From Rhodosorus marinus CCMP1338 (Eukaryota; Plantae; Rhodophyta), in contig JAMWBK010000001.1 of the NCBI GenBank assembly GCA_029953675.1, positions 1,550,001-1,614,000 on the forward strand: a stretch of DNA of 64,000 nucleotides, read 5' to 3'. Of this stretch, positions 10,942-52,032 are shown piece by piece. Position numbers and translations under genes: made by a program. The notes under the pieces were generated by a model, which did not search any database, was not told the origin of the DNA, and saw only the letters and a list, made by a program, of their open reading frames with translations. How positions within the stretch are numbered: position 1 is the stretch's first letter; each line of letters begins with the position of its first letter.

Positions 10942-11028
10942 CGCTTCGAGATAAACAGGTTGGCAAAATTGCGGGCGCTAAACCGCTGCCAATCGCGGGG
11001 TGCGAAAAAGTTGATTTTTGGGGACATT

Positions 11029-14509: not shown

Positions 14510-14519
14510 GACATTAGCA

Positions 14520-15380
14520 TACCGACTTTGGGGCTCGAACCCACGACTACAAGATTTAAGAGCCTCGCGCTCTACCAACTGAGCTCTCAGTGGCTCATGA
14601 CCGTACCAGCCTTTCCGCCACTCACACTGTCGGGTTTCGAACACGCACACTTCACTGCGCTTATACCTCGGCTTACATCAGCCCCCCTGGCCGTACGAGA
14701 TGGGTGTCCTCTCTGCTCTCAGACTGAAGACAACGCAGATTTTGGCGCCCGCCTGCTCGGTAGTTGCCCGGCGGTGAAAGGTGCTCGAACCCGCCGCCAT
14801 ACGCGGATCTTGAACCTGTTATACCGGGAACTTCGGCCAATAGTCCGGCAAGCCGGTCTGGAAATCGAACGTGAAAAACCTTTACCCGTCGCGGACTTTC
14901 AAAATGATGAACGCCGTGTAGCCGACCTGGTGATCACCTGTGACGACAGCCGCCGTACCACATACGTTGATCTTGCTGTTCCTAATCCTCAAGCTAGTCG
15001 TTATCTCCCGGCTGCGGGGGAGCGCCGTGGATCTGCCGCCGCCAGTATGAGACGCCGCAAAGAGATCAAATACGCGGGGGCTTTGTCTTCCCCTGGTGTT
15101 CGTCCTTCGGCACTAGCACATCGCTCGGTACCCCTGATCATTGAGTGCTTTGGGTTCATGAACTCTGTTGGTTCTCGCTGGCTTCGGGAGTTGTTCCGCG
15201 AACGCCCTGACCGTCTTCAATCGTTGTTTACCCGCTTAAGTTTCCTGCTGTGGCGCATGAATGCCGCTTTGATGTTGGAGGCGCGAGTACTTCGCCGCAC
15301 TTAGTCTTTTTTTCCCCTCGGGGTTTTTTCTTTCAGCCTCCGATTAAACCATTCGTTCGTACCAACTGAGCTAGGCCGCC
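14520..15380 (-). pseudogene. Second tRNA-Lys(CTT)-like unit, split by a family B insertion
   Basis: 14520-14585 plus 15373-15380 reconstitute a sequence homologous to 10869-10941, and the flanks (TTGGCAAAATT..GCGCTA; TAGCATA) are also shared. Confidence 0.85.
14586..15359 (+). mobile_element. 5'-truncated family B element (RLE domain plus 3' end) with a 13-bp TSD
   Basis: Peptide VADLVITCDDSRRTTYVDLAVPNP..KEIKY; ends CCGATTAAACCATTCGTTCG; TSD TACCAACTGAGCT at 14573-14585 and 15360-15372. Confidence 0.95.
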
Positions 15381-15764
15381 GGCTTCGTGATTAACGGGGT
15401 TGGCAAAATTGAGCGCGCTAGCCCGGAGCTCAAATTGCTGAGAGCGTCGGGGTCTTTTGCGGCAGTTGCTGGCTGGGGACGTACGAACTGGGAGGTTCGT
15501 GGGCAGTTTGACATCAAGACTGCGTACTAATATGGCATGGAAGAGGAATTTAACATCTATAGAACCACATCAAGGAGATAATAGGCGATGTTAATGAAGG
15601 AGAAAAGGGGCGCGGAGGTGCTCTTGTCGAAACTAGACAGAGACCGGCGGGAGAAGGCCATGGAAGAGGAATTTGGCGTCTATAGAGCAAGATCGGATCT
15701 GAAATTTTGGTCAAGGGGTTCGCTGGGAGTTTAGGTAATGAAGACAAAATTACAGCCACGCTCC

Positions 15765-20884: not shown

Positions 20885-22468
20885 TTAATGTTCGCAAAGA
20901 GAAAAGCTCCTTTCAAAAACCGTTTCGTTGTGTTTCTTTACAAACCGGCTCCGTTCCCTCATTAAATCGTCACGGTATTTCCTTGCCTGCTCTATAGTCA
21001 TCGGCCGCTCTGGATGACCTCCAGATTGCGATTTTTTCCCGCGATACCATGCCTCCTGTTGCGGTGGAACCCTCCTCGTGCTCCACACACGTCTCGTTGG
21101 ATCCACCAGGAAGAACACCAGAATCTTCCTCACACCGGGCTTCCTCGTGTCCGACAGATGAAACGGCTCTACTCGGTGCTGAAGCGTATTCGGAAAGCAC
21201 ACGCACCGACCAGAGGTACATAGAACGTACCCTTTGGATTGGTTCAGCGGATCTTCGTCAACTATCCCGTACACAGCCTCAACGCCTCGTTGATCGTCTT
21301 GTTCGTAGTCTGGTTCCTGGACAGCCTGTCTGAAGCTCAACCTCGACTCCGTGATGTTCTCCGATGCATAATAGTAGATCCCTGACGCGACGATGTGCTC
21401 GTTCTCCATTCCCTCTACGTGCCAAGCGCCGCCTCCGTAGCTCGGTTTGGCTGGAGTGAGAACGATGTTGGCGAGCTTGGTAATCACCTGCAGCCTTCGT
21501 CCTCGGAGTTCAACCCTGTCGCGGAAACCCTCTGGCACGGGAAACGACGCCGGTAGCGATGGTTCAATGACCGGCCGCGTCTCCTCCCACTGTTCCGTCG
21601 CTCGGTAGTCCTCTTCTTCGTCGAAGTTGGGAGTTGGGGGGTACCATTCGGTTTCTACTTCGATCAAATTGGGCCAGGGGTTCTTCATGTGCGTCAAGAC
21701 CTTTTCAAACATTGGAATGAACCTCGAAAGGATCTTTTCCAGAACTTGAACGACGTGCGCGTGGTCGACTGGGTGGACGTTGTTCACGTACGAATCGAAC
21801 TTGGCGTTGCCACAGTCGTCGATGACGACCTCAGAGGGAAGCCACTGGAACTTTGAGGATACCGTGTACCTGCACGCCTTGAATCTATTGAAGTCAAATG
21901 CCTCATCGGAGCGATCCCTGCTTTCGTCTCTGAAAAATTCATCGGTGACCGGCTCACCGTGCCCAAGCAGTTGGCTCCAGTCCATGTCCATTTCCGCCTC
22001 CGATACCACGGGGCTGACTCCCTTCACGAGGCAAAAGAGTGAAGGATGAACCAAGTCTAGAACCTGTTGATCCGATCCAGGATGCCAATCCTTATCCGGC
22101 GAATCTTCAAAGATCTTCACAGCGCTCAAAAGTCTGTCACGGACCTCCGCTACGATCCGTTCATCTGACTCGTAAACGCCATCAACCGGAGCCGGTCTGA
22201 TGTCACCATCGCGCAGTTGATTCAGGAAATTGAGCTTCTCCATGACGATCTTATACGCCTCGCTGGAGGCACCCTGTTCACGCGCTTCTGCCTCCCATCT
22301 TTGGGCAACCTCTTCCCTCTCAATCTTGTTCCACCAGTCGGGCTTGATCATCAGCGCATTGCAAAGCTCTTGCACCCTCAGCTCGACCAAGCACCTCGGT
22401 CGAGCTGAGGGTGCTCCGTCCAGTACATACGACGGAAATTTGCCAAGATCATCGTTGCTCTCCATCAC
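20885..22468 (-). CDS. DUF4246-like protein (527 aa), probable 2OG-Fe(II) oxygenase-type fold
   Basis: Intact intronless ORF. Motifs DWHPGSDQQVLDLVHPSLF, KFQWLPSEV, YVNNVHP, QVITKLANIVLTP, WHVEG..EHIVASGIYY, FPNTLQHRV, RKILVFFLVDP are ones I recognise from DUF4246 proteins. Confidence 0.85.
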   Translation of the reverse strand: MMESNDDLGKFPSYVLDGAPSARPRCLVELRVQELCNALMIKPDWWNKIEREEVAQRWEAEAREQGASSEAYKIVMEKLNFLNQLRDGDIRPAPVDGVYESDERIVAEVRDRLLSAVKIFEDSPDKDWHPGSDQQVLDLVHPSLFCLVKGVSPVVSEAEMDMDWSQLLGHGEPVTDEFFRDESRDRSDEAFDFNRFKACRYTVSSKFQWLPSEVVIDDCGNAKFDSYVNNVHPVDHAHVVQVLEKILSRFIPMFEKVLTHMKNPWPNLIEVETEWYPPTPNFDEEEDYRATEQWEETRPVIEPSLPASFPVPEGFRDRVELRGRRLQVITKLANIVLTPAKPSYGGGAWHVEGMENEHIVASGIYYYASENITESRLSFRQAVQEPDYEQDDQRGVEAVYGIVDEDPLNQSKGYVLCTSGRCVCFPNTLQHRVEPFHLSDTRKPGVRKILVFFLVDPTRRVWSTRRVPPQQEAWYRGKKSQSGGHPERPMTIEQARKYRDDLMRERSRFVKKHNETVFERSFSLCEH

Positions 22469-23763: not shown

Positions 23764-24118
23764 CGAACGAATGGTTTAATCGGAGGCTGAAAAAAAAACC
23801 CCGAGGGGAAAAAAAGACTAAGCGCGGCGAAGTACTCGCGCCTCCAACATCAAAGCGGCATTCATGCGCCACAGCAGGAAACTTAAGCGGGTAAACAACG
23901 ATTGAAGACGGTCAGGGCGTTCGCGGAACAACTCCCGAAGCCAGCGAGAACCAACAGAGTCCATGAACCCAAAGCACTCAATGATCAGGGGTACCAAGCG
24001 ATGTGCTAATGCCGAAGCACGAACACCAGGGGAAGACAAAGCCCCCGCGTATTTGATCTCTTTGCGGCGTCTCATGCTGGTGGCGGCAGATCCACGGCGC
24101 TCCCCCGCAGCCGGGAGC
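23764..24118 (-). mobile_element. 5'-truncated family B 3' end (355 bp) with a 10-bp TSD
   Basis: Near-identical to 45925-46275; TSD GGCCCGGATA at 23754-23763 and 24119-24128. Confidence 0.95.
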
Positions 24119-25237: not shown

Positions 25238-25530
25238 TGTCGCCCTGTGGCGATATTCTAGCCAACATGCTTGCTGAGGCGAGCCATTGGCGCCTGGGTT
25301 TGCACGTTTCCCTCCCTAGTTCTTAGTTCCTTTTCACGCCTTGCGTAGCGCTTCAGGCTATGCTAGTAAAAGCCGTTGCGATATTCTAGCAGCGCCCTTG
25401 CCGAGGCGCGCCATCCGCGCCTCGGGTTGCACGCTTCCCGCCATAGTTCTTAGTTCTCTTTGAATGAATGAATGGTTCCCTTTCACGCTCGCGTTGCGCT
25501 CCGGCCAATGCACGTAAAAAACTGATAAAA
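25238..25530 (+). mobile_element. Two head-to-tail short A'-type 3' ends
   Basis: The RLE C-terminus plus 3'UTR occurs twice (ending near 25372 and 25515). The second contains a 13-bp (GAAT)n insert. Confidence 0.8.
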
Positions 25531-28560: not shown

Positions 28561-28729
28561 CCAACCCAGAGAAAAAGAAACCGCATTCTTTTTGCATATG
28601 TGGACCATCTCTGTTGAAGCTTGCGAAGGGCTTGCAAGAGAAGGTCTTATCGTGTAGTTGGTTAGCACGGGGCATTCTGAATCCCTAGCTCCGAGCTCAG
28701 GTCTCGGCAGGACCTCGGGTATGTACATG

Positions 28730-29089
28730 TCCTGTGGGCGCGCCCACCTCGCTGCCGCTGCCCGCCACCGGGGGCCATCCGCTTTTTGCCCTTCGCCTAG
28801 TGAAGGAACGACGGTAGGCTGAGAGTATGGCCAGTCTGCCTTGCGCAGAGGGTCGCTGCCACCGGTTCAAGCCTTTCATTGTGGAAAGCTTTGGTCACGT
28901 GGAGAATTCGAGGTTGCAGTGGTTGTGGAAATGTTTAACTAAGTATCCTACCGACTACTCGGAACTCTCAGGACATACTAGTCTCGCCCGATTCCAGCAG
29001 TATGCATACCAAGGCGCGCCATCGTACGCTTCCCTCCCTAGTTCTTAGTTCCTTTTCACGCCTTGCGTAGTGCTTCAGGCTATGCTAGT
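28730..29089 (+). mobile_element. Diverged A' 3' fragment, tail-to-tail with copy A5
   Basis: ASLPCAEGRCHRFKPFIVESFG; ends CTTCAGGCTATGCTAGT. Confidence 0.85.
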
Positions 29090-29158
29090 TTTACTGGACT
29101 TTACTGGACTGGACTTTACTAGCATAGCCTGAAGCGCTACGCAAGGCGTGAAGATGAA

Positions 29159-32100
29159 CTAATAACTAGGGAGGGAAGCATGCAACCCCAGGCGCCGATG
29201 GCGCGCCTCGGAAAGCATGTCGCTGGAATATCGCCAAAGGGAGACACTTAAACGCCTCAAGAGCGCCAAATATTCAGTAGGATGCTCAGCAAAACATTTC
29301 CGCAACCACTCTAAACCCGACTTATCGACGTGACCAAAGCTTTCCACAATGAATGGCTGGAACCGGTGAGAGCGACCCTCAGCGCAAGGCAGACTGGCCA
29401 TGCTCTCAGCATACCGTCGTTCCTTAACTCTTCGAAGGGCTGAAGCCGCGGCCCCCCGGCGGCGGGCGGCTGCGGTGAGGTGGGCGCTGGCCACGGGGCA
29501 GGTAATCGCAAGGTCCACATATGTTGAGCGTCTGGCAGCAGCGTCGGAGACGAGGAGATCGGCTATACAACGGGGCGGTGCAGAGTCCGAGATGGATCTG
29601 GGCAGTTCCGACTCAACCTCAACCGTATGCCCTATCCGAGTCAAAAATTCGCTGAGGATGTACTTGAGGCGAGTGTGACGCCTCGTACGGAGACCTCTCA
29701 ACAGTCCGCAGGAACCCAGGAAGTGGTAGCCACAAGCGTCAATCCGGCTCTCACATCCCTGACAGAAAGACGGCCGATTAGAGTGCCACGGAGCCTGTGG
29801 CAAACCGAGATAGATCCGTGCGGCAGAACGGAACTGGAAAGCATCGAGACGATGACTCAATGACGACGGTAGAGTGGTTAACCACAAGTGCGAGAGGTGG
29901 CCTCCCATGCCGCGGAGACGAGCGGCAGTGGTAGGCGGCGTGAGAGGAGAATTGAGCATGACTGTGTGAGCGGCACTGTGTTGGCCCCAGGTGAGGCTAT
30001 GTTGAATCACATCAGTGCGGGAGCTCCACAATCGGCTCAAACCCGGGTAGTCTGCAACAGGGGACCCGGGGCTAGCCTCTCCGTCATCGGCAAGAACTCG
30101 GTCGAGGGGACAATCCTCAATCGCTTCAGCTCGTCCCCATAACAGCTCCCTCCAGGAACGAAAGCGGGACCGATTTGCGTCCGGCACGGCGTTGCACCTC
30201 CTGAACGCGTGTTGAAGACCATCATAAATTGTCAAAAGCGGGGGCGGCAGGGTCACTGGATCCTCGTTGGTCAAAGCTCGAGCCAAGAGGCAGGCACTTC
30301 GCATCCGGAAGGTCACCAACGTTCGCAGCGCGGTAGCCCAGGAGGCAACCGCCGCTGGCGAGCATACCAGCCCACGGTCTGCGACGCCGAATCCCCCTAA
30401 TCGCAACGGTAGAGCGATCTGTGCACGAATAAAGTCCCTGTCGGGAGCAGCTTCAAGATCGAGGGGCTCATCCAAGAGCGTTCCCCAGTGTTGCAGGGTC
30501 ATTTCGTCGGCTTTAGCCGCGATCCACGAGCCCCAAGCTGGAGGCAGGCTGCGCAACCAGTAGTTGAGTCTGGGACCGGCACAAAAGCGGGAAAGCAAGC
30601 AGGCCGATTGCAGCATGCTGTCGGGTAGGTGCTCAATGGCGTCGGTGAGTTGCTTGTGCCGTGCCAAAACTCGCTCGCAGGATGCTTGGACAAAGTTGTC
30701 AGTCCCCAATCCGACGCCGTGGTGTTCGAACCCTTCACGTTCGCTGATTAGTCGCAGAGTGGGTGGCAGAGAGTTCAGCGACACGTCCCTCGGGGGGAGA
30801 AAGCGACATTTTTCTGTTTCCACAGTCAAACCGACGCGACGTGCAATCGCTTCGATCGCGGTCAGTCCCCTAGCCAGGGTGTCAGGGGTGCCCAGCAATG
30901 TTACGTCATCGTGGTACGCGCAGATTCGAAGATCCGAGACCTCAGTCGAAAGACGTAAAAGTACGAGCTGTAGGGCACAGGCATGAAGAAGAGGTCCGCA
31001 AGGGTCGCCTTGTTGGACGCCAGTATGTGCTTGAAAAACAGTGCCCTCCGTTGTCAAGTAGGGGAGGCTCTCCCCTCCGTAAATACCCGATAGAAACGGC
31101 CACGCCTCCGGAAACACACGTCGGAGCACCTCTAGCGCATGCGTCCGCGACACGCTGTTGAATGCGTTCCGGAAATCAACCACCAAGACTCCCCACTCCG
31201 GCCTACTGGCGCGTTCTAGCTCGATCCCATGGGTGATCAGTTCGCAACCCCCAGAAAATCCCACCCCTACTTGCAAGGGCGCCATAAAAGCTGTGACGCG
31301 CTGGCGAAGGCGCTGGCATAGCCACCTCCCGGCTAACTTCCGTAGGCTCTCCACCATCCCGATCGGCCGGAGACGCGGGTGGGCCGGCTGGTGGTCAGGT
31401 TTCGTGAGCAAGCAAAGCTGTGCCTGCCGGAGATGTTCCCATGGCGCGGACGCACCCGATACGCCCTGGAACAACTTGTTAAGGATCCTCAGAAGCGCGC
31501 TCTGGCCAGGCTGGCTCAGGGCCTGCAATAGCTCTGTTCTTAGTCCGGAGGGTCCAGGACAGCGTCCCCGACGCGAGGTACGAAGCAAATCCTCCAGGTC
31601 AGACTCACTGAGCGTCAGATCGATGCGAAACCTGGCCAACTCCGGACGGTCCAAGAATACCTCGAATTCAGGGGACAAATCCACGTCGGACTCAGGGAAC
31701 AAAGACGACACCGTCTGGGCGAGACTATCATCGTAGGGAGGACAGGCGCCTGGCCCTCCAAAACCCGCGCCGCTCGACTTAAATCGCCCACTGCTACCAA
31801 TTTCTGTACTCGAGCTGGCACGGGCGACACTGTGCCATGCCGAGTCCGACGGGCGGATGGTGCTGACGACGCCAAATAGCTGCGCTGTAGTACTTCGAAG
31901 TCTCCCTTCAAGAACAGGGCCAGTCGGTCTCGTACTCGCCATCTGCGCTCCGATGTGTGAATGGGGGCCAGAATCATGCGCGGCATGACCCCCAGAAAAA
32001 CCCAAATGACTGTGTCCCGAATGTTGCGAGCCAGGCTCGTGAAGATGAAATCGAGAATGGTTCCAGCTACCAGAAGGTCTCCACGAGGAAGGACGACTGG

Positions 32101-32229
32101 GGGAATGCCCCCACGGAGGGGAAGCGAGCCTCCTTCCAAAGAAATCCACCGCCGGAGCCAACTCCGAAAACGCGTACGCCAAATGCCCCAGTCTCCGCCC
32201 TCCTTCAGGACATAAGACTGTAGATCCAT
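29159..32229 (-). CDS. Family A ORF2: reverse transcriptase + CCHC knuckle + restriction-like endonuclease (about 1023 aa after restoring one C near 31737)
   Basis: Track ORFs 31615..32229 and 29159..32182 overlap; copies A1 and A7 have CTCCCCTAC where A5 has CTCCCTAC. All RT and RLE motifs are present. Confidence 0.88.
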
Positions 32230-32260
32230 AGGCTGCGACCTCGCAGCCGTGCCTGGAGCG

Positions 32261-33669
32261 CTAATCGTGCTTCTCCCCCTTAGACCCGGGGGAGTCGGTC
32301 CTCGCTCTCTTACCTCCTATCCGCACCAAAGTCGTGAGCCTCCCACTCCGCGAGGCTCGCGGAACGGATCCCGCGGGCTTCAGCAAAGTAACCTGGGCGT
32401 CCTCCACCGCCATGCCCTCAGTCTGCTCCCCTGCCTCACCACTCTCGCTGGAAGTAGTGCTGGAAGCAGAGCCCTCCAAAATCCCCACCCGCTGCAGCTC
32501 TGTCTTGTAGCGCGAAGTCAGCACAAGTCGCCTCTCCAGATCGAAGAAACTGGAAACCGCCATGCGCAGGTGACGAGGGCCCGACCGGAACCGCGCCAAC
32601 AAGATCCTCTCAAGGCGCTGAATCCGTAGCCAATGGATCGCTGCCGCCTTCACGCTGCTCTCATGCTCAGAGAGCCCTGCCGTTTCTCCCGGAGACAGGA
32701 AATTGCCCGAGAAACGGTCAAAATCGAAGTGCAAAACCACCTGCGGGTTGCAGCGCAGCCACCGGGCGCTCTCAGGCCACTGCTCGGTAGGCTTCGCCAG
32801 CAAGGCCTCCAGGTACTTGGCGGCGGTTGCGGAGACCAAAAACAGCACATCGCGGCCCTCATAGTTTGCGAAGAAGAAATCACCCCGGCTGCACCCTAAC
32901 GATTCCGCAAAAGTGTCCCGGAAGTCTCGCATAGACGGGACCTGTCCTCGTGTAGTCTGGGGCCGGACATTTCGCACCCACAGAAATTGGAGAGTGGTCT
33001 CCACAGGTCCATCCTGAGGCTCGCGAGATGGTATGAAACGGAGCATAGCCGCCGTACGTGTGGCAGTGGTGCCCTTCCGCAAGACTGATGCGTACGAAGC
33101 GCCCCCTTGCGGCCACCACGTGCCCCCGAAGTAGCCGGGAGCTGGTGACGACCTGAGGGCTGGTCCAAGAGAGGGAAGTCCACAGCTGCAGTCTCCTCCA
33201 CACCGGTTGCCGCACAGTCACCACCACCATTGCCTCGAGTCCCCGAGCGCTGAAGCGCGTTTTGGCCCGGCCTGCCGCTCCCCAACGTCGTACTGTCCCG
33301 CGCAGAAGCAACAGCCCTCGCCTGTCCCGGGACAGGTTCATGTTGATTGACCGGATGTTGACTGCCTTCAGCCAACGCTGCCACTCTGGGGCAATTCAAA
33401 TTCTCGTCCGAATTTGAATTTGACCTGGCCAGCAATCCCGATTCCAGCCCACCTAGCTTCTGGGTGAGCTGAGGGAGCACTCCACGATCACTCGCAGCCG
33501 TGATCAGGCTGGTGACAGCGGAGATAAGTGAACGCGCCTGGGTGCCAGAAGCGCCTTCCAAGTCAACCTCGGAAGAAAACGTGCCGCAGCTGAGGCGAAC
33601 ACGGAGTCCCCCACCTGGCAGTGCCTCCTTGGGAAAAGGCTCCGTCGAGTGCGGAGATATCCCTACCAT
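32261..33669 (-). CDS. Family A ORF1 (about 469 aa after restoring one G near 33105), function unknown
   Basis: Track ORFs 32896..33744 and 32261..33082 join using the G6 run of copy A1 (A5 has G5). Homologous to B ORF1 along its length. Confidence 0.8.
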
Positions 33670-33949
33670 CCTGAGGGAATCCGCCAAGGAAACGTTGCAC
33701 CACCAATATGAAACCGCACCGAGAGAATAATCGACCAAACCCAACCCAAATAGGAAAGGCCCCGCAACTCACCCACCCGGAAGACAGAAGTAGTTGCAAA
33801 TGCAAACGACGCCCCGCGGAAAATCGAGGGGAAGGCGTACCAGAGGAAGCGCTTCCCGTAAACGAACACGCTCGCGACCGAAAAAGAAACAAAACCCCAA
33901 TCCTCGACAACTAGCATAGCCTCCTACTAGCATGGGGGGGGGGGTACCC

Positions 33950-35900
33950 ACACAACTGTAACTCGCTCGGTTTTTTTTTTGACGAAAAGCACTGGAGCCC
34001 CCCATTGGCTGTTGGAAGGCGTTATGAAGCCTTTCTCGATGAGGTTCTCCAGCTGAGTGTTCAACTCTCGCCGCTCCAATGGCGATAGTCGGTACGGGCA
34101 CTTGAACACCGGCTTCACGCCGCCTGTTTCAATTTCTGCGTCCTGCTCCCGATGTGGCGGTAGTTTCTCCAAGGTATCGACGAAGAGCTCATCGAACTCT
34201 CTCCGTAGCTCCTTCTCGGCTGCGCTCACTTCCTTCGTCGTTCCCGGATTCTCCATGCGCGGATTTGGAGAACACCGATATTCTCGTCACCGCCGACTGC
34301 TACTTCCTTTCGTCCGACCAGCAGCACCTCCGTGACGTCACTCGGTGTAGGCTGAAGTTTGAGGCACCGTAGTGATTCGTCCTGCCCTAGATCGTTCACC
34401 GCCGTCAGGAACCCGTCACCTGGGTGGATTATTACGCGGTTGCGCTTTAATGGGGAGTGCCCGAAGCCATCCAGGATAATACCAGGATCGCTTCGGGCAC
34501 TCCCCATTCTGCGACTCGAAACGTCTCCTCACTGCGCCACTGTAGTGTACATTCCACCGCGATCCTTCTGACTACGCCTACGCGTAATGAGTGTCCGAAC
34601 GCTGCACCCAGCGACTCGGTCGCCTTCGGCACCGTGGATTGCATTTTGGCAGCCGCCGCGGTCGTCATCAGGTTTCACTTGTGCCCCACTGTCCACGACC
34701 GCACTGACCCTGACGCCGTCTACCTTTCCTGGATCCGCAACAACGGTTGCCGTTGGTCAGGTACGTCAGCGTCCTGCGATGGTCAACACCCGGGCTGCCG
34801 GGTCTTCACTCCCATCCTCCTTGCCTGACGGCGCCTCCACCATGTTCACCCTACCTTTCTGGTTCTGTCTTCTTTGCCGCGGCCCGCGCACCGTACCAAC
34901 CGCCAGCAGTACTAGGGCATCCAGGTGGGGTGATGGTTGGGGGACGATCTGTACTGGTCGTGACTTGGCCTGGCCGGCCGTTGGTTTCTACCTCGCGTCT
35001 TCGCCATCTTCCCCCTGGATCCGGATGTCTCCTCGGTAATTGACACTGCCAATTCTATGGCGTGTTGCTGTGACTTTGGTCGTAGTGCACGGACGTAGGC
35101 TCGTTGATGAGTCCGCAACCCCGCCACAAACAGCTGAGTCTGCATGAACTCGCTAAGGCACTCAGGGTCATACCTACGAAGATGATCCAATGTAGATTCA
35201 AGCTCCGTGGCATACTCATTAACCGTTGCCCCTTCCGGTTGACGCATCCTCTTCAGCTTCATCGCCAAGTCCACGTCCTGACTGTGACTGGCGAATCGCG
35301 TTCACAGGGCATTTTATAACGCTGCCCACGTTGTCCGTTGTGCCACGGGGAGGGTGCGGTACTTCGGTAGCGGTCTTTGCAAGCTCTCGAACCGCGATGA
35401 AGAGCACGTCACTGTCCTCCTCAAGGGTATAAACGGCCCTCAAGTGTTCGAGCTCGCTTATGAAGGTCTCGACGTCTGAAGTTCCGTCGAAAGTCGGGGA
35501 CTCAGACTTCTTTGGTAGTCGTCCCGATCGAGCTCCTTGCTGTTGTTGTAGCTGTTGCTGCTGTTGTTGTCGTTGTAGCTGTTGTACGCTCGCACAAGCT
35601 GCTCCGTCATCCGCTGCTGTTGCTCTAGTAGTTGTGCAACCGCGGGCATCCATGTACCCGGAGGAGGTTCGGGTTCCATTTTTCTTCAAACAGCAGGTTC
35701 CAGAGGCTTCAGCCCCGAAAACCCGCCAAATATTGGAACTTTTCGTCTCAGTAACCCCTTCACGAAGAGTTGCTTGATAAGTCCAACGAAATTTCCCCCT
35801 GCCTCCACTTTACTAAGCACTATCATACTCTACTCCGTCCTAGCCTATTTGTACCCTCAAACTAGCTCTCTACGTATCTTTCATCAAGACTAACTGCTAT
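33950..35900 (-). mobile_element. Decayed Ty3/gypsy LTR retrotransposon (gag and 5' part of RT)
   Basis: Gag-like PTFDGTSDVETFISELE and RQPEGATVNEYATEL..LFVAGL; RT start KPVFKCPYRLSPLERRELNTQLENLIEKGFITPSNSQWGAPVLFVKK. Confidence 0.88.
34449..34508. repeat. Inverted repeat with a perfect 19-bp stem inside the gypsy remnant
   Basis: AATGGGGAGTGCCCGAAGC ... GCTTCGGGCACTCCCCATT, plus inner ATCC/GGAT pairing. Confidence 0.95.
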
Positions 35901-36129: not shown

Positions 36130-38835
36130 TGTTGCATGGGGTCCGGGTACGACGAATAAATGAAGGCACCGATGTTTGGGAAAAAGATTACAATAGAGGT
36201 CAATTTTCTACATGGTCTCATCGCTTAGTGCGATCACAAATACCTTTGTGTGATGGAAACCAGAGTGAGTTTGGCTGAGGGATCAGCAAACTATGGACCT
36301 GAAGTTATCCCCAGTATTTACGGGGGGGAGGAATCCCGAAATGCCTTCGGGCAGTGGAAATACCAGTTACAGACGTTTCTCCGGCTCAAGGAAGCAGCAA
36401 ACGTACTAGTGGACGGCAGGGGAGTCGACAACAAAGACGCAGAATATGTGTCTGCTGTCCTAGGGCGGGTTCTGGTGGGGCAAGCGCTTGATATAGTCAT
36501 CGGCGCAGGGGAAAACCGAAGGACCAATGGGATCATCTTCGCGAAATATACGACACGATGGCAATAAGAAACGCGGACAGCGTTTGGGCCCGTGTTCACC
36601 GACGCAAGATGAGGCCCACAGAAAGCGCTCCCGCGCTAACTTCGTGGCTAGACAAGGAGTTCGCCGAGATACGAGAAATCTCTGGCGAGACTCCGAAGGA
36701 CTCTGAGAGGTTAAGAGTGATGAGAAAAATCCTTGAGGACCGGCTAGAATTCTAGGATTTCCTCTTTAACACGTGGATAGATCCTAACCTCTCGTGGGCG
36801 ATGTTGTGCAGGAACCTCGAAGAGTACACAGGAAGTTGGCAAGAACGCCAATAGGAGGAACCCAAATCCAAAGAGAGGCGCATGGGAGGGAAACCCCTGA
36901 TGGCCGCGACCCAAGCGACCAGGAAGACGCACAAGTTCAGGTGATACAATTGCGGCTCACGGGGACCACTTCAAGATTACATGTCCAGAACCGGAAGAGC
37001 CAAAGAAGTTCCATGCCAGCATCGTCAGAGACGCGGAAGGCTCAACGCGCTTCTTCCTCGTGCCACCGACCACGTATGCGTCGATAAGGAGGCGTTCAGG
37101 ACCCTCACAACAATCCCGAAGGTCGGAATCACCCTCGGAGACGGGAGAGAAAAGGGAGCTAGACGCAAGAGGAGCAAGTGGATCTCCATACGTAATATAG
37201 AACTCTGCTGACGCTCAACAACACCTATTACTTGAAAGGCGGTGCAAAGAACGTGATTAGCTTGAGCAGGCTAATGGAAAAGGGCCTCAAAATTAGCAGC
37301 ACGAGTCGCGCAGTTTTAGAAATCAGTAAAGAAGGAACGAAAGTTTTGACATGTTACTTGAAACGGGGCCTCTTAGTAACTAATTTATGGACTGCAAAGA
37401 TACACCCTTCGGTAACTGTGAAATTTACTGGGCAACTACCTAATGCAGCGCAACACTAACCTCGTAGCCTTTATTCGGCAGCTACCCACCGCAGCGCAAT
37501 ACCACTACTCTATGTACCCCAGACTAACGTAACCGTAAACTTTACTGGGCAGCTGCCTACTGCATCGCACAACTATTTCCACCCCAGACTAACGGGCGAA
37601 ATACGGCATCCCTCATGCTGAGCACAGAAGGCTAATTCACCCAAACTCAGAGGCGACAAGAAGTTTGATGAGCGCGGGGTTGAGATTAGCACAGATGAGA
37701 GCACCCCAAACCCCCTCGACTGCGAGGATTGCCTGAGGCGAAAACGACGGTGAAGCAAAAGTCTGGACACCTACGACACGGAAGTTTTCAGTGAAAGCCT
37801 GCATTCAGACATTGCAGTGCCATTCCCGGAAGGAGTGCAACAGGATAGATACCTCGTAGTCTTCCCCGATGAGGCTAGCGGATGGCCAGGAGTTTACCCG
37901 CTGCAAAGCGAGTTGTGGTCGACGAGGCGTTCAAGGAGCACATCATGTAACCTGAAAACCCAGCTGGGAGCGACGGTGAACAGGCTGAAGTAAAAAAAAA
38001 GAAGAAAATGCAAAGGAGTACGAATCTATGGAATATATCCTGAAGGAAAGAGGTATTGTATGGGACGTATCCGCCCCATATACGCCTGCCAGCACCGGGA
38101 TAGCAGAAAGGATGGTCAGAACGGTCACCAAAAGGATCATGTATCTATAACAGCGGCGTACCAAATTGCTTCTGGACGGAAACTTTGGAGACAGTGACAC
38201 GGAGGACTGAACAACACACCGAGAGCGTCCCTTGGAAACATAGTCCCCCACGAGTACGTCCTTGGAACGAAGCCGAATCTACAGAGCCTATGCACGTCCG
38301 GGGCAGAGATCACCTTCAAAAAGGAGGGAAAGGGAAAACTGCCACATATTGCCCAGGGCAGTGTCCGGAATTCTTACGCAGGTGAGTAACGCCCGTGTAG
38401 CGAGAGCATACTTGTCAACAGAAGATAAATTTATACATACACGAAACTGGAACATACAGGAAGAGCAACGTCCTGCGAAAGCACAGAAGATTCGCAAGCC
38501 TGACAACGAATGGCCCGAATCGTCGGGAGAATCACAGAGCACACAACAAGTAGTAAACACCATAACCCTGAACTTGCTCCGAAACGAAGATCACATGTAA
38601 GCCATTGGCGGTCCATACGCGGCAGAGTGGAAGAGAGCAGCCGTTGAAGAAATTGGCTCACTGAGAGAAACGGGAAGATGGAAATAAATCTCCAAAGAGA
38701 TTTACCCAAGGGAAGGAGTTTCCTGAGCAGGGGTACTGTTTCACTCGAAACAGTACCCCTGCACCGCTTGTGATGAAGCGGTGACAAACTTCAAAGTAAG
38801 AATTGTCACTAGGGGATTTACGCAAGTTGACCGTC
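36130..38835 (+). mobile_element. Decayed Ty1/copia element, copy 1 (gag, protease, integrase, start of RT)
   Basis: QWKYQLQTFL gag; ATDHVCVDKEAF..ITLGDG protease region; PYTPASTGIAERMVRT integrase; ends at ..RGFTQ. Multiple stops and frameshifts. Confidence 0.85.
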
Positions 38836-43609: not shown

Positions 43610-45560
43610 TGGAATGCGTCGTACCTCGTACTCGAACTCGACAAGTTTCGCGGGGAACCGCGTCATGCTTCGCGATGGCTGAGCCACTTCCTTTTTCGGT
43701 GAAGACCACCGTCTTCAATCCTTCCAGGTAATGGCGCCATGTCTCGAAGCAGTCTACTACTGCTAGCATCTCCTTCTCATGCGCGGGGTACGTAAGCTCT
43801 GCACCTTGCAATGTACGCGATGTGAAAGCCACCGAACGTCCTTCCTGCACCAAAACCCCTCCGATCCCCTCCCCAGCGGCATCGGTTGTGACCTCAAACC
43901 CGCTAAGGCGGGGACCGGTTCCGAGGTCACGGCAGACATCAGTTGCTCGAAGGTCCCCAAGATCTCCTCCGTAATCTGGAAAGGTATTTCCTTCTTAGGC
44001 AGTCTCGTGATAGGAGCCGCTCTAGCAGAAAAACCCTTCACAAATCTCCGGAAATAAGAGAGCAGCCCCGTTATCAAGCGCACCCTCGCCACATTCTTCG
44101 GAAATCTCAACTCTGCTTAGCACAGTCCTCACGTGTTGATAGTGCTGAGTCTCATCTGAACTGAATATTAAGATGTCATCCAGGCACACGACAACACAGC
44201 GGCCCAGAAACTCCTTCAGCACTTCCGTCATATTTTCGAAAAGTAGGAGGGTAACGAAGTCAACCCAAAGGGTGCTACCCTACACTGGACTTTACTAGCA
44301 TAGCCTGAAGCGCTACGCAAGGCGTGAAGATGAACTAATAACTAGGGAGGGAAGCATGCAACCCCAGGCGCCGATGGCGCGCCTCGGAAAGCATGGCGCT
44401 GGAATATCGCCAAAAGGAGACACTTAAACGCCTCAAGAGCACCAAATATTCAGTAGGATGCTCAGCAAAACATTTCCGCAACCACTCTAAACCCGACTTA
44501 TCGACGTGACCAAAGCTTTCCACAATGAATGGCTGGAACCGGTGAGAGCGACCCTCAGCGCAAGGCAGACTGGCCATGCTCTCAGCATACCGTCGTTCCT
44601 TAACTCTTCGAAGGGCTGAAGCCGCGGCCCCCCGGCGGCGGGCGGCTGCGGTGAGGTGGGCGCTGGCCACGGGGCAGGTAATCGCAAGGTCCACATATGT
44701 TGAGCGTCTGGCAGCAGCGTCGGAGACGAGGAGATCGGCTATACAACGGGGCGGTGCAGAGTCCGAGATGGATCTGGGCAGTTCCGACTCAACCTCAACC
44801 GTATGCCCTATCCGAGTCAAAAATTCGCTGAGGATGTACTTGAGGCGAGTGTGACGCCTCGTACGGAGACCTCGCAACAGTCCGCAGGAACCCAGGAAGT
44901 GGTAGCCACAAGCGTCAATCCGGCTCTCACATCCCTGACAGAAAGACGGCCGAATAGAGTGCCACGGAGCCTGTGGCAAACCGAGATAGATCCGTGCGGC
45001 AGAACGGAACTGGAAAGCATCGAGACGATGACTCAATGACGACGGTAGAGTGGTTAACCACAAGTGCGAGAGGTGGCCTCCCATGCCGCGGAGACGAGCG
45101 GCAGTGGTAGGCGGCGTGAGAGGAGAATTGAGCATGACTGTGTGAGCGGCACTGTGTTGGCCCCAGGTGAGGCTATGTTGAATCACATCAGCGCGGGAGC
45201 TCCACAATCGGCTCAAATCCGGATAGTCTGCAACAGGGGACCCGGGGCTAGCCTCTCCGTCATCGGCAAGAACTCGGTCGAGGGGACAATCCTCAATCGC
45301 TTCAGCTCGTCCCCATAACAGCTCCCTCCAGGAACGAAAGCGGGACCGACCCTACACTCGAAGTGCCAAATTCGCACATGAAAGCCGTCTTCGGAATGTC
45401 GGCTTCAGCGACACGCATCTGCTACTCCGAAGATCCAACTTTGTGAAGACCCTGTCCCTCGCCAATGGATCGAAGAGTTGGTAGATCCTGGGCGATGGGT
45501 ACATCAAACGGCGTGTGACCTTATTCAGGAGGCTAAAGTCTACACATCTGCGAAGTTCAT
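43610..45560 (-). mobile_element. Decayed Ty3/gypsy RT-RNase H fragment, interrupted by a family A insertion
   Basis: ELRRCVDFSLLNKVT..FTKLDLRS..KTAF (45560-45350), PFGL..VVVCLDDILIFS, GLLSYFRRFVKGFS, VAFTSRTL..TYPAHEKEMLAVV (44286-43610). Confidence 0.9.
44287..45348 (-). mobile_element. 5'-truncated family A element (1062 bp) with a 10-bp TSD
   Basis: TSD ACCCTACACT at 44277-44286 and 45349-45358; RLE ORF 44335..45216. Confidence 0.96.
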
Positions 45561-45975
45561 CTCGCGCTGAGGGTCGCTCCCACCGGTTCCAGCCTTTCAT
45601 TGTGGAAAGCTTTGGTCACGTGGAGAAGTCGGGTTTGGAGTGGTTGCGGAAATGTTTCACTGAGCACCTGTTAAATACTTGGAACTTTTGCGGCGTTTAA
45701 GTGTCTCTCTGTGGCGATATTCGAGCAGCATGCTTGCCGAGGCGCGCCATAGGTTGCGTTCTCACGCAATCTTGCTCAACTCTCCCCTCACACCGCATAC
45801 CACCGCCGCTCGCCTCCGAGGCATGGGAGGCCATCTATCACATTTGTAGTTAACGACCCTGCCGTCATCACTGGGTCACCGTCTGAATGCCTTCCAGTTC
45901 CGCTCTGCCGCACGGATTTACCGACGAATGGTTTAATCGGAGGCTGAAAGAAAAAACCCCGAGGGGAAAAAAAGA

Positions 45976-48900
45976 CTAAGTGCGGCGAAGAACTCGCGCC
46001 TCCAACATCAAAGCGCCATTCATGCGCCACAGCAGGAAACTTAAGCGGGTAAACAACGATTGAAGACGGTCAGGGCGTTCGCGGAACAACTCCCGAAGCC
46101 AGCGAGAACCAACAGAGTCCATGAACCCAAAGCACTCAATGATCAGGGGTACCAAGCGATGTGCTAGTGCAGAAGCACGAACACCAGGGGATGACAAAGC
46201 CCCCGCGTATTTGATCTATTTGCGGCGTCTCATGCTGGCGGCGGCAGATCCACGGCGCTCCCCCGCAGCCGGGAGATAACGACTAGCTTGAGGGTTAGGA
46301 ACAGCAAGATCAACGTATGTGGTACGGCGGCTGTCGTCACAGGTGATCACCAGGTCGGCTACACGGCGTTCATCATTTTGAAAGTCCGCGACGGGTAAAG
46401 GTTTCTCACGTTCGATTTCCAGACCGGCTTGCCGGACTATAGGCCGAAGTTCCCGGTATAACAGGTTCAAGATCCGTGTATGGCGGCGGGTTCGAGCACC
46501 TTTCACCGCAGGGCAACTAGCGAGCAGGTGGGCGCCAAAATCTGCGTTGTCTTCAGTCTGAGAGCAGAGAGGGCACGACGAACCCATCTCGTACGGCCAG
46601 GGGGGCTGATGTAAACCGAGGTATAAGCGCAGTGAAGTACGCACTTCGAAATCCGACAGTGTGAGTGGCGGAAAGGCTGGTACGGTCATGAGCCACTGAG
46701 AGCTAATAACCCCTCCAAGACTACGTAGGCGGGCGCGAGCGCGAGAAGATGAGACCATCTGCGCGAGGAGTCGGCCATATGCAGCACGGTGCAAGTCCCA
46801 AGAAAGGATATTTTGCAGCGCATCCGTACGTGCTTGAGCTCGGCTCCCAGCGCGCTGGGAATCATCAGGAGGATCAACTGGAACTTCTTCTTCTGCGGCA
46901 ACCACTGGGTCAATCTCCCCTAGAACAGGTTCAGGCGCAGGACGAATCCCCGGGGCGGAGCCTCGAGAGCGGTCAAATACAGCTCGCCAGTCAGGAAGAC
47001 GGGGTTGAACGGTTTCGGGGAGGCTAGTACAGGAATTCAGGGCGGTTTGGAGCTCCAGAAACAAGTCTTGGGCGCTTTCCGGTACGCTGGGAAGCAAGAC
47101 ATCCCGCGAGAGGCTCGCCATCAAATTGCGGAACTTCGAGATACCCAAACTGCTCAAAGTGGGAAGTGCGGTTCCCCAGGCCCCTACTGCGGCTGCGGCT
47201 TGGACCACAACACGGTTGCAGAGGCCCAGTCCCCCCAATCGCAATGGGAGGCCTACCTGGGCGCGCACAACATCACAGGTGGGTCGCGACAGAGAAAATA
47301 CCCAAGGTCACGGAAACTTTCAGCATCCGCACGAGTGGCCAACCACCGGCCCCAATGAGTTGGAAGTGAGCGAAGCCAGTAGGTTAACCGCTGACTGCAA
47401 CAATACCGAAACAGCAACAACGAGCATTGGAGAAAGCCCGGAGGTAGCCGTCGAAGCTCTGCAACCAGCTGTCTGTGCTTACCGAGGAGCTGCAGCAACT
47501 CGCCTTCAACGAAGGACGGCGACCCGTAGGGGATGCCTAAGTGGACAAAACCATCCGGTCTCCAAATATCCTGGAACGACGCAGGTACCTGCTGCTCTCG
47601 TGCAGCTACACCTCCCCAGTAGAACGATTTGTGATGATTAACCTCCAAGTCAACCCGCGAAGCCAAGGAGCGGAGACGATCATAAGCGAGCGCTAGAGTA
47701 TCGGGGGGCCCCGGGAGGCACACGTCGTCGTGGTATGCAACCGTACGAACCTGCGGGAATTCGGAGCGAAGACAAAGCAAGACGAGTTGTAGTCCACGGG
47801 CATGTAGGAAAGGGGACAAGGGATCACCCTGTTGTACCCCTGTGCGCGCCGCAAACGTGTGTGAGGAAGCGCCAAGGGTATCATAGGTAGCCCCACGACC
47901 AAGCGGAGAATAAAGTCTACTAACAAAGGGAAAGCCTACAGGGAAGACTTCGCGCACCACGTGCATGAGAGCCGGACGAGAGACGCGGTTGAAGGCATTG
48001 GTAAAATCTACGGAGAGGAGCCCAGAATCTGGGGAGTACGCCATTTCCGAACGGAGTAAAACAGACAACAACTCACAGCCACCACGATAGCCCACGCCTA
48101 ACTGCACGTGCCCAAAGAAACGGCGGGATTCGGGAACCAGGATTTTCACTAACCATCGCGCCGCCAATTTGCGGACCACCTCAACCAGGCCAATAGGGCG
48201 AATAGCAGGGCTCGAGGCCGTGTGGCCGGGCTTCGAAAGCAGACACAACTGCGAACGCCCGACCAAGAACCACGCACACTCACACAGGGGATCACCATTC
48301 ACAAGCGCTTCGACCACCCACGCCAACGCCTTCAAACCTTCATCACTTAAGAAACGGAGATATTCCACCCGCAGCCCCGAGGGCCCTGGGGAACGGCCCT
48401 TCGGAGCATCATGAACCAACTCACGCACCGCCTCCAGATTGACCACTAACCGCGCACTGGGATGTGGCGCGGCGCGGTACTCTTCCAACACTGATTCAAA
48501 CGAGGAGTCCCAAGGGGAGCCTTCCGAGGGAAAGAGCAAACGGAGCGGTGAAGAAAGATCATCGGAGTATGGAACCACAGGTTGCCGCTGCTGGAGGATC
48601 CCGGCTGCCCGCCGCAGATCACCGCCTGCCACCGCGTGACGCGCCCGATTCTGTCGAGAAGACCTAAAAGCTGAGGGAGCACTAGGAGAAAAGGAAGAGA
48701 GAGAAGCGAAATAAAGACGTTCGAGGTCCTCAAAGTCGCCGGAAAGGAACATTTGCAGTTTTCGGCGAGGATGGACCCGGCGAGGATGTGGGTTGAGGGG
48801 GACGGTAGAGGAGGTGAGCACGAGGCGGGGAAAAAAGAACAAGAGTTCCCAGCGAAGAGAGCAGTGAGGGTTCGCGGCGACCTGCTGCCAGAGAAAATCC

Positions 48901-49100
48901 AACACCAATCCTAGGGGCTTATGAAGTCGACGAGGGAGCCGTACGGCCGTGCTCTGACGACAAAGGGGAAGGGAACCGTCCGGGTAGGAGGCGACAAGGT
49001 GCGAAAACCACGAGAGAACACGCTCATGCCAGGCTGAGCGGTCACTGGTAAACAGGGGTAACCGGGACGACACGCACGCGGAGGAAGAAGACTCAGACAT
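45976..49100 (-). pseudogene. Family B ORF2 (RT-CCHC-RLE) with one frameshift (about 47270) and one stop (46216-46218)
   Basis: QLGVGYRGG, VDFTNAFNRV, GVQQGDPLSP, AYHDD, CPLC..H..C, VADLV..YVDLAV. TAG occurs where the copy at 15060 has GAG. Confidence 0.88.
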
Positions 49101-50391
49101 CGGGCCTCCCCTCAGTCGGGAAGGCAGATCGAATATCCGGAGGAGGTGCCTCGGAGGGAGGCTCAGGAGCCGCACGACGCTTACGTGGAGGGCGCACGAA
49201 GGAACTAAAAGACCTGAAGAAAGTAGACACAGGGTTTTCAGCAGCGGAGTCTTGACTGAGGGTGTCCAGAGCCAGCGGATTCGGAGAGGCCGATGGTGCT
49301 CCTGCCATGTCGGTGTCACGAGCCTCGGAGACAGGGCGAGGGGAGGAAGGGTGCTCAAGAGTCGGCGGCAGAAAGTCAAACGCAGGGTGGGCTTCCAGCA
49401 GGGTGGCCTCAGTGGAGAGGAAGGCCTCTAGCGCGGTGCGGAGGACCCCGCGAGGAGGAAAACGCGCGAAGAGGCTCGCCTGTATGCGCGAGAGCCGCGC
49501 CGCATGAGTGTGTAGCGCGACAACCGAAGCCTGCGAGGCATCCAGGCTTTGCAAGGCCGACGGAGGAACCCAGCCGGCGTCAAAACGATCGAACTCGACA
49601 AACAAAGAGACATGAGGACGAGTCAGTATCATGTTGGCCAGAGCAGAGCGCTGGGGCGCGGGGGTGGTTACAAGCGATTGAAGGAACTGGTAAGCCGAGT
49701 CAGTAACAAGAAAACAGGCATGAGGGCCCGTGAAGTCCACATATAGGAATTCAGACGGGGCGACCCCAAGGGAGGAAGCCATGGTGTCGCGGAAATCGCG
49801 GTAGTGGACGGGCGCGCGGCCCCGACCACGAGAGGGGGTCTGGGGACGCACGTTCGTCATCCAAACAAAGTGGAACGGAGATAGTTGGCGAGAAGAGTCA
49901 ATAGGGATGTGTTGTGGCATCATACGCACCATTGCCGTCGTGCGTTGTTCAGAAGAGCCCCTGCGTAGGACCTGCGAATAGGTCGCACGTGGGGCACTGG
50001 AGGGAGCAGGATTCGGGCCCGACGCGGGCCCAGGAGGCGTCTGTCCTTGAATAGGGGTAGGCCAGTCGGAATCAGGAATGACCGGAGCGGAGCGCTCGGG
50101 TCGGGTGGAGGCAGGCCCCGCTGTACCGTGCGGATCCGCGGGGACGGGCACCGGGGGGTATGGGGCAGGCGCGGAGGCGGAGAAGCGCTCCAAATAGGCG
50201 ATCAGCAGGGGCAGGCGGTGTTCCTGGGAAGCAGTCACAAGAAGACTCGTCAGTTTCGAGCAGATCCCATGGGCTAACTCGTCAGCGCAGTCCGTGAGGG
50301 TGGCCGCGGTACTAAACCCGCCCACGCTGAGCTCCACGCGCGCTGAGAGAACGGCTCCGTCCGCCGGAATGGGTGGGGAAACCCCAACCAT
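49093..50391 (-). CDS. Family B ORF1 (432 aa), homolog of A ORF1
   Basis: Intact ORF. MVGVSP..RVELSVGGFS..KLTSLLVTAS and ATYSQVLRRG..FVWMTNVRPQT..RDFRDTMASSLG align with A ORF1. Confidence 0.85.
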   Translation of the reverse strand: MVGVSPPIPADGAVLSARVELSVGGFSTAATLTDCADELAHGICSKLTSLLVTASQEHRLPLLIAYLERFSASAPAPYPPVPVPADPHGTAGPASTRPERSAPVIPDSDWPTPIQGQTPPGPASGPNPAPSSAPRATYSQVLRRGSSEQRTTAMVRMMPQHIPIDSSRQLSPFHFVWMTNVRPQTPSRGRGRAPVHYRDFRDTMASSLGVAPSEFLYVDFTGPHACFLVTDSAYQFLQSLVTTPAPQRSALANMILTRPHVSLFVEFDRFDAGWVPPSALQSLDASQASVVALHTHAARLSRIQASLFARFPPRGVLRTALEAFLSTEATLLEAHPAFDFLPPTLEHPSSPRPVSEARDTDMAGAPSASPNPLALDTLSQDSAAENPVSTFFRSFSSFVRPPRKRRAAPEPPSEAPPPDIRSAFPTEGRPDV

Positions 50392-50804
50392 AACGATTGG
50401 AAGGTGTGAAAAACCGATTCCCTAACGAAACCCCCAAAAAGAGAACTTGTTCCCAACGTTTGCAACCAAAGAAAAACCACCACGACCTCCAAGGGGCGCT
50501 AGCAACCCCCAGCACGCACCACACCACTAGAAGATGCGGGGGAAAGTCTGCAGAAAGAAGCGCCTCCCACCGAAGAACACAATTGCGACTCAAAACCACC
50601 AAAAGCCAGCACCATACACCCTCACGAAACCAAAAACTACTCTGTCCGGGGAGTAAAAGAGGTGCTCCGCAACAGAAAGCAGTGCAAAATCTGAGCAAAG
50701 CGCGGTAAACGGGCGTGGCAAGCCACTAACCAAACATAAACCCCTCCAGAAAAATATTTGTAACAAAAGCATCTAAAATTTAGATGCATCAAGTTGTTAC
50801 ACTT

Positions 50805-51192: not shown

Positions 51193-51265
51193 AGCCAAAC
51201 AATCTAGTCATTTGATAACGTAGTTCCTTTTAACGGTCTGCGTAGCGCTGTAGGCTATGCTTATT

Positions 51266-52030: not shown

Positions 52031-52032
52031 AA

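Follow-up and report, generated by a model that had tools for sequence, protein, structure and literature searches.

Two related R2-group retrotransposon families without N-terminal zinc fingers in the red alga Rhodosorus marinus

About 57% of the 64-kb window analysed here (positions 1,550,001 to 1,614,000 of contig JAMWBK010000001.1 in assembly GCA_029953675.1, deposited for the red alga Rhodosorus marinus; PMC10250338) stems from two families, A and B, of the same kind of retrotransposon. These families are probably two related lineages of R2-group long interspersed nuclear elements (LINEs), each with two open reading frames (ORF1 and ORF2), whose copies are dispersed, non-randomly targeted, and chained by template switching of the reverse transcriptase (RT). 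Judging from sequence, the core of family A is one that has recently been mobile without a zinc finger or a Myb domain. All counts of copies, insertions, and junctions given below refer to this one window of one genome, and the ORFs of both families are without gene calls in the public record of the assembly.

Element structure and relationship to R2

Family A is represented by three full-length copies (Table 1) and by many 5'-truncated ones, and identities of 99.2-99.6% between A copies point to recent activity. An earlier note on this stretch, made from the sequence alone, had named a reconstructed ORF2 of 1023 aa and ascribed it to an element with a restriction-like endonuclease (RLE). Its interval, strand, and motifs proved correct, and the 1023 aa were reproduced once a 1-nt deletion had been mended. 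In copy 1, ORF2 is split into two offset frames, i.e. an ATG frame (31615..32229; 204 aa, beginning with MDLQSY) and an RT frame (29159..32182; 1007 aa). One nucleotide is missing at window position ~31739 (A position 2195) and is present in three other copies; its restoration yields exactly 1023 aa, and the 1023-aa ORF2 is thus a reconstruction. Because copies 1 and 2 share a 1-nt deletion in ORF1 and copy 1 also carries the deletion in ORF2, none of the A copies in the window is intact.

Both families bear the marks of target-primed reverse transcription (TPRT): fixed 3' ends, tails of (AAAGTCCAGT)n in A and (TCGT)n in B (the latter following a 3' end of ...CAGCCTCCGATTAAACCATTCGT), 5' truncation down to stubs of 28-33 bp, and target site duplications (TSDs) of 6-13 bp. 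The ORF2 products of A and B are 37-39% identical, and the nearest database proteins are only 33-35% identical.

The only Pfam match on A ORF2 was RVT_1 (E=2e-15). When the single A ORF2 was compared with solved structures by phmmer, R2Tg/R2 was matched (E=3e-14) in the RT and weakly in the CCHC/endonuclease region. A profile built from 52 relatives matched R2 from the RT through to the end of the nuclease (E=2e-55), and R2Bm from somewhat upstream of the RT; the same profile also matches LINE-1 RTs. A full-length ORF2 model, obtained with AlphaFold2 on the 52-relative alignment (predicted local distance difference test score (pLDDT) 85.5; predicted template-modelling score 0.86), had as its top Foldseek matches the R2 complexes initiating TPRT (9nl3, 9nl2, 9dou, and 8gh6; E~1e-23, template-modelling scores 0.5-0.6). 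The R2 match spans the full length of the model, and human LINE-1 ORF2p ranks behind the R2 structures. Together with the YHDD motif, the CCHC knuckle, and the nuclease residues (RRHTR at 850, D891, D906, and K936 in A), the RVT_1 match and the R2 matches in sequence and fold assign the elements to the R2 group of RLE LINEs, in agreement with the RLE type named in the earlier note. An N-terminal AP-like endonuclease, which is a trait of Dualen and RandI, was not found, the N-terminal 215 aa being without a Pfam match at E<=10.

Upstream of ORF2, A and B carry homologous ORF1s that are 30% identical and share a conserved core (SYxxVLRxG ... RDFRDT ... FLV ... FDRF). Neither ORF1 has a match in Pfam or in the Protein Data Bank (PDB) or contains a C2H2 or CCHC pattern, and the only close database relative is the protein P0233. 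Since RLE LINEs of the R2 group have been described as single-ORF elements (PMC3636483, PMC5678591), the two families depart from the description of their group in this respect. A gene resembling B ORF1 is also carried by the sequence L004 (JGI sample 3300016967).

A 12-mer, GGCTATGCTAGT, is located directly 5' of the A start TGTCGAGG in all three full-length copies (at least TGCTAGT of it in copy 2). In copy 1, it is found both there (33910..33921, minus strand) and ahead of the 3' tail (29119..29130, minus strand), and it is either a terminal direct repeat of A or the trace of a jump. An A-like sequence with 77% nucleotide identity (L003, 1..1468; JGI sample 3300017118) lacks an internal segment, A position ~2770 being followed directly by ~4740, and may be a non-autonomous derivative or a transcript. 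The A 3' end, used as an exact pattern against metagenome contigs, gave chance-level matches only, with no further similarity.

An N-terminal domain without fingers

The N-terminus of A ORF2 contains four tryptophans (W14, W17, W24, and W28) followed by GSLPL (residues 34-38), LDF (59-61), and PRMIL in copy 1 or PRLIL in copy 3, and that of B follows the same scheme (MSES..W..WF..GSLPL..LDF..PRLVL). There is no Cys in A ORF2 before residue 224, which makes a zinc finger upstream of the RT impossible, and only two His precede the RT; the three Cys in the N-terminus of B are not conserved with A. No match to Myb or to any other known domain was obtained in Pfam at E<=10 for either N-terminus, and no PDB chain was matched by sequence or profile. 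A model of the isolated domain, which is only moderately confident (pLDDT 62), had no Foldseek match at E<1. In the full-length model, residues 49-122 form confident helices and the Trp-rich residues 1-46 are of low confidence. The statement in the earlier note that zinc-finger and Myb modules are lacking is thus borne out for zinc fingers by the absence of Cys in A, and no Myb was detected by the Pfam and PDB searches.

The domain can be aligned across A, B, the metagenomic relative P0061, the proteins P0021 and P0040, and the Pyropia proteins P0003, P0016, and P0078. A profile of it matched 1678 representative proteins at E<=1e-3, 170 of them at E<=1e-10. Among 36 long representatives, at least 13 have the domain at or near residue 1, with no upstream Cys and with an RT (RLE was scored in all but one), and ~16 have C2H2-like motifs upstream of the domain, including Pyropia P0003 and P0016; P0078 is likewise finger-bearing. 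The domain is kept with or without fingers, which indicates that it is the constant part of the lineage and that fingers are optional. The Trp-rich start that had been described as shared by A and B is therefore present in both but not peculiar to them, as it belongs to this large domain family. As far as protein sequences tell, the finger-less architecture is already common in the databases.

It is highly improbable that the finger-less N-terminus is an artefact of decayed copies or of a misplaced start codon, with the active element carrying a zinc finger or Myb further upstream or in ORF1. Such a reading could draw on the frameshifts present in every copy in the window, on the ORF2 frame of A, which stays open for ~87 nt before the ATG and overlaps the end of ORF1, and on the upstream fingers of the Pyropia relatives. 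It is contradicted by the two families themselves, which are only 37-39% identical yet both place the start of ORF2 right where ORF1 ends and open it with this domain, finger-less in either case, and by the absence of C2H2 and CCHC patterns and of Pfam matches in either ORF1. In addition, the domain stands at the start in an independent contig (P0061/L002) and is N-terminal, with no Cys upstream, in at least a dozen database relatives.

Insertion sites, head-to-tail chains, and probable template switching

Six TSDs, all different, are present in the window, as had been reported before. Family A shows GACATT around a two-copy chain (11023..11028 and 14510..14515) and the 10-bp ACCCTACACT (44277..44286 and 45349..45358); family B shows the 13-bp TACCAACTGAGCT (14573 and 15360), GGCCCGGATA (23754 and 24119), TGACTCGGAT (52706 and 52744), and GAGGAAT (9727 and 9790). 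In an automated scan of 22 insertion units, a TSD of at least 6 bp was detected in exactly these six; among mismatched pairs, which served as the control, at least 6 bp was reached in 7% and at least 9 bp never. Support for the 6-bp GACATT, the weakest of the six, comes from the adjacent tRNA-Lys unit, which is uninterrupted and provides a paralogous empty site, and joining the flanks of the 13-bp TSD restores a tRNA-like gene (ARAGORN). The TSD-bearing insertions lie in unrelated contexts, namely a tRNA-Lys D-loop, a tRNA spacer, unique DNA, and other elements.

The pentamer ATCCG is located within 12 nt of the 3' junction in four of the eight B-type insertions (Monte-Carlo test, family-wise P = 5e-4; among 20,000 random sets of eight stretches of the window, 0.05% had a 5-mer common to at least four), and two of these four sites share CCCT|(T)ATCCG. 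This recurrence hints that the nuclease or the priming step retains some sequence preference. The A-type flanks yielded no significant motif (GTAG, in 3 of 11, was not significant).

These observations bear on the proposal of the earlier note that nicking is fully independent of sequence, with 6-13 bp staggered cuts and no target bias whatever. Six differing TSDs in unrelated contexts and the lack of a DNA-reading zinc finger or Myb agree with it, and the stagger does describe the six sites. We nevertheless consider it unlikely, given the ATCCG at the B junctions, the excess of head-to-tail A junctions, and the lack of a TSD in 16 of the 22 units; a general claim drawn from six sites was an overstatement. 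More probably, an ORF2 without a dedicated DNA-reading module would nick many sequences and so give rise to dispersed copies, with a target choice that would still be non-random: next to ATCCG at the first nick in B, and downstream of another A 3' end in A.

An A 3'-end sequence lies immediately 5' of all three full-length A copies. At 11 of ~27 A-type 3' ends, another 5'-truncated A-type copy is found within 45 bp in the same orientation, and two ends are arranged tail to tail; no chains were seen among the B-type copies in the window. Examples of chains run from 14512 to 11036 (with one TSD), 52665 to 58080, 52650 to 51261, 20778 to 19470, and 4904 to 5903. Over 531 of 531 positions, the partial A preceding copy 2 matches the 3' end of copy 2 itself, whereas other chain partners share 71-96% identity.

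The single full-length copy of B is preceded by a piece of U2 small nuclear RNA (snRNA), which fits exactly between a 5' fragment of A (50805..51192; A positions 29-416) and the 5' untranslated region of B. The Rfam match to U2 spans 50657..50819 on the minus strand and scores 50.1 bits against a gathering score of 46. No TSD was found around the composite. Its order, A 5' piece, U2, and B, has the geometry of an snRNA-LINE chimeric retrocopy and looks like a product of template switching. A Utopia-type, U2-targeted insertion of B was considered and rejected, as U2 lies on the 5' side of B and no 3' flank of B is U2.

Taken together, the chains, the 531/531 partial copy, the single TSD round two copies, and the U2 fusion make template switching the best explanation. 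On reaching the end of an RNA, the RT would most likely continue at the 3' end of a second RNA before the cDNA is linked to the chromosome, and part of the chains may also stem from insertions into same-family tails already in place. R2 proteins are known to switch templates in vitro and in cells, generating head-to-tail repeats and U6 fusions (PMC11371274). Furthermore, the finger-bearing relatives P0003 and P0016 in Pyropia vietnamensis (GCA_042855435.1; L021 1..20397 and L020 1..12686) are arranged in head-to-tail, full-length units of ~7.1-8.1 kb that are 99.3-99.6% identical, so that concatenation looks like a trait of the lineage. The Pyropia units end in a (GGTAGG)-like 3' tail, the last unit of L020 lying 33 nt before a (CA)n microsatellite, and neither host DNA nor an Rfam gene was found between the units.

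The chains may also be read as successive insertions by tail-targeting specialists, in which nicked DNA pairs with the 3' repeat of the RNA, (AAAGTCCAGT)n or (TCGT)n tails are preferred, and the TSD-bearing copies are off-target. This account overlaps with the one given above and differs mainly in the origin of the chains; we regard it as possible, if rather doubtful. The 11 A copies that follow another A 3' end usually do so after 1-4 tail units, chain partners often come from different subfamilies, similarity to or overlap with the tail unit AAAGTCCAGT is seen in the TSD-bearing A targets AATGTCC and AGTGTAGGGT, and some HERO families and Togen families are microsatellite specific (PMC4640811). 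However, tail units are hardly ever found away from an element body (all 13 matches lie at element ends), B-type copies form no chains, and the U2 piece upstream of B is left unexplained. The 531/531 identical partial copy fits a single event better, and tail-less junctions exist within chains, e.g. GGCTATGC|GTTAAGG at 52459/52460.

Several points weigh against template switching by finger-less, dispersed elements as the account of this window. The window is an unusually dense nest, and its counts may not represent the genome. With 16 of 22 units lacking a TSD, the 6-13 bp stagger describes a minority. Chain partners belong to different subfamilies (71-96% identity), which is equally compatible with successive insertions into tails and with jumping between RNAs expressed together. 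Upstream of U2, the A fragment stops at the internal A position 416, unlike the usual end-to-end jump, and, with a single full-length B in the window, U2 could be a fixed part of the B 5' end. Finally, the poorly modelled residues 1-46 of ORF2 could conceivably harbour a small, unusual DNA-binding motif.

A wider and more speculative view, to which we attach little confidence, combines these elements of the argument. The Cys-free N-terminal domain would be a previously undescribed module for handling nucleic acids and the hallmark of a large RLE LINE lineage, for the most part without annotation, in red algae, protists, and animals, with fingers optional. Targeting in the finger-less members of this lineage would depend on short pairing between nicked DNA and the 3' repeat of the RNA (ATCCG in B, the element's own tail in A), and template switching by the RT would string their copies together. 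If this is true, the finger-bearing Pyropia and finger-less Rhodosorus elements would be a natural matched pair for dissecting the aiming of R2-type enzymes.

Several other features of the copies were observed. Independent A copies are 5'-truncated at a nearly identical point (window positions 11616, 52665, and 20024, corresponding to A positions 4246, 4250, and 4275), and further truncations cluster at A positions ~4700-4710 and ~4764-4792; such clusters hint at favoured positions on the RNA for stopping or jumping. At 51218..51262 (plus strand), an A-type 3' end is duplicated perfectly over 43 nt in inverted orientation, tail to tail with the element concerned (51265..51307, minus strand) and with TTATTA between; snap-back or self-primed synthesis is possible, and we have no firm explanation. 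Twin priming was rejected for the tail-to-tail junctions on strand geometry, as it predicts outward tails and the tails here face each other. As a general cause of the chains, nested insertion was dismissed on the strength of those ending at 14512, 20778, 5903, and 58080, in which the part absent from the downstream copy does not reappear upstream of the chain. Among the B-type sequences, one insertion in an A-type 3' region consists of the tail only (TGAATGAATGAATGG, antisense; 25461..25475), with a probable imperfect 7-bp TSD, and is an extreme case of 5' truncation. A 55-bp antisense internal piece of B ORF2 (58077..58131, minus strand), 100% identical to 47648..47702 and without a B 3' end, is located right after the tail of A copy 2.

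Comparison with known elements and features of the window

R2 (R2Bm and R2Tg) is the best match to A and B in both sequence and fold. The two families share with it the RT, the linker, the CCHC knuckle, and the C-terminal PD-(D/E)xK nuclease, as well as TPRT, 5' truncation, and non-poly(A) simple-repeat 3' ends, and the template-switching behaviour of the R2 RT (PMC11371274) is matched by the signs seen in A and B. In contrast to R2, they lack an N-terminal zinc finger or Myb and have two ORFs instead of one, and ORF2 of A has ~205 residues ahead of the RT, where R2 has ~410-630. R2 sits in 28S rDNA, whereas the A and B insertions lie outside rDNA, and an Rfam scan found no rRNA in the window. 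The R2 junction is near-flush, as against the 6-13 bp TSDs of A and B. The identity between R2 and A ORF2 is only ~16% in the structural alignment.

RLE LINEs that insert without a fixed target have been described before. The HERO clade holds many non-specific retrotransposons, some of its families being microsatellite specific (PMC4640811), and site specificity is also lacking in EhRLE3, HEROFr/Tn/Dr, and YURECi (PMC3636483). With their six different sites, A and B resemble HERO, EhRLE3, and YURE in insertion behaviour as described in the literature. HERO has been reported from animals and A and B come from a red alga; moreover, the R2-group clades have a single ORF (PMC3636483), whereas A and B carry ORF1. 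BLAG of Blattella germanica is R2-like, randomly located, non-site-specific, and without a c-myb motif (PMC7650587), but keeps an N-terminal zinc finger and its own signature motifs, whereas A and B have neither finger nor Myb and a different conserved N-terminal domain. The use of A and B as a contrast to site-specific R2, which the earlier note had put forward, is thus not new, since HERO, EhRLE3, YURE, and BLAG are already non-site-specific; what differs here is the lack of both fingers and Myb, the ORF1, the conserved N-terminal domain, and the red-algal host.

Utopia is an RLE LINE linked to U2 snRNA genes, with occasional tandem insertion and TSDs of 0-20 bp (PMC4640811). Utopia and NeSL have one to three N-terminal zinc fingers and, on the 3' flank, U2 from nucleotide 39 onwards, whereas A and B are finger-less and nucleotides ~50-192 of U2 lie 5' of B. 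In Penelope-like elements, a full-length copy may be preceded head to tail by a 5'-truncated copy (a 'pseudo-LTR'), and inverted neighbours occur. This arrangement resembles the A copy pairs, but Penelope-like elements have a GIY-YIG nuclease and belong to another RT lineage, whereas A and B have the CCHC/PD-(D/E)xK combination. In U6/L1-type chimeric retrocopies, an snRNA is fused upstream of a LINE as in U2/B, an outcome expected of RT template switching, and U6 fusions occur among R2-driven insertions in human cells (PMC11371274). In the present composite, by contrast, a 5'-truncated U2 takes the place of U6, an additional 5' piece of A precedes it, and no TSD was found.

R2-type proteins are in development for RNA-templated gene insertion, for which aiming, and the loss of an aiming module, are a practical question. 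Family A offers a compact, 1023-aa R2-like core with an uncharacterised N-terminal domain, an ORF1, and traces of template switching, and its finger-bearing Pyropia kin allow direct comparison. What is gained is a well-documented case, together with a hint, open to testing, that some target bias remains, rather than a new principle.

Table 1. Coordinates of A- and B-derived features and of a host gene in the 64-kb window
Feature	Position	Strand	Remarks
Family A copy 1, full-length	29107..33933	-	4827 bp as delimited; 5' end at the high coordinate
Family A copy 2, full-length	53262..58080	+	99.6% identical to copy 1 over full length
Family A copy 3, full-length	~444..4907	+	97.5% identical to copy 1
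A ORF1	32261..33669	-	~470 aa; 1-nt deletion near 33107 in copies 1 and 2
A ORF2, copy 1	29159..32229	-	1023 aa after mending; ATG at 32229, stop at 29159
A ORF2, N-terminal domain	31855..32229	-	aa 1-125; Cys-free, basic (pI ~11), helical
A ORF2, RT core	30791..31588	-	aa ~215-480; YHDD, aa 439-442, at 30905..30916
A ORF2, CCHC knuckle and PD-(D/E)xK endonuclease	29423..29764	-	CCHC at aa 823-841, CQGCESRIDACGYHFLGSC; aligned to the R2Tg CCHC/RLE region
A 3' terminus and tail	29090..29142	-	...GCGTAGCGCTTCAGGCTATGCTAGT followed by (AAAGTCCAGT)-like units
Inverted A-like 3' end	28724..29089	+	Abuts the tail of copy 1
Head-to-tail A pair	11029..14509	-	A positions 1924-4823, then 4246-4826; one GACATT TSD; in tRNA-Lys spacer
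5'-truncated A copy	44287..45348	-	A positions 3761-4826; TSD ACCCTACACT
Partial A copy joined directly to copy 2	52665..58080	+	A positions 4250-4823, with 28-bp B stub
Chain of four A-type 3' fragments	51261..52650	-	A positions 4620-4812, 4506-4826, 4772-4818, and 4044-4818; different subfamilies
Family B, only full-length copy	45924..50656	-	
B ORF1	49093..50391	-	
B ORF2	starts 49103	-	MSESSS; frameshifts near 47260 and 46216
U2 snRNA-derived piece	50657..50803	-	nt ~50-192 (stem-loop IIa, Sm site, 3' stem-loops)
B 3' fragment in tRNA-Lys-like D-loop	14586..15359	+	13-bp TSD TACCAACTGAGCT
B 3' fragment	23764..24118	-	10-bp TSD, TATCCGGGCC in element orientation
B-type stub inside A copy	52716..52743	-	28 bp; 10-bp TSD, ATCCGAGTCA in element orientation
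B stub with (TCGT)n tail	9734..9789	+	33 bp plus tail, 56 bp in total; 7-bp TSD GAGGAAT
Host gene, DUF4246 protein	20885..22468		

Other sequences in the window include a Ty3/gypsy-type polyprotein fragment (33927..34256, minus strand, to ~36000; RT motif ...SQWGAPVLFVKKK), which is split by A copy 1, the 5' junction of that copy sitting in the gypsy RT fragment. A distinct repeat of ~2.7 kb is present at 36133..38826 and 58260..60769. tRNA-Lys(CTT), at 10869..10940 (minus strand) and again at ~14520..14585 plus 15373..15420, belongs to a tandem unit of ~170 bp; in the second of these units, a B fragment interrupts the tRNA, the anticodon loop is one base longer, and the spacer holds an A chain.

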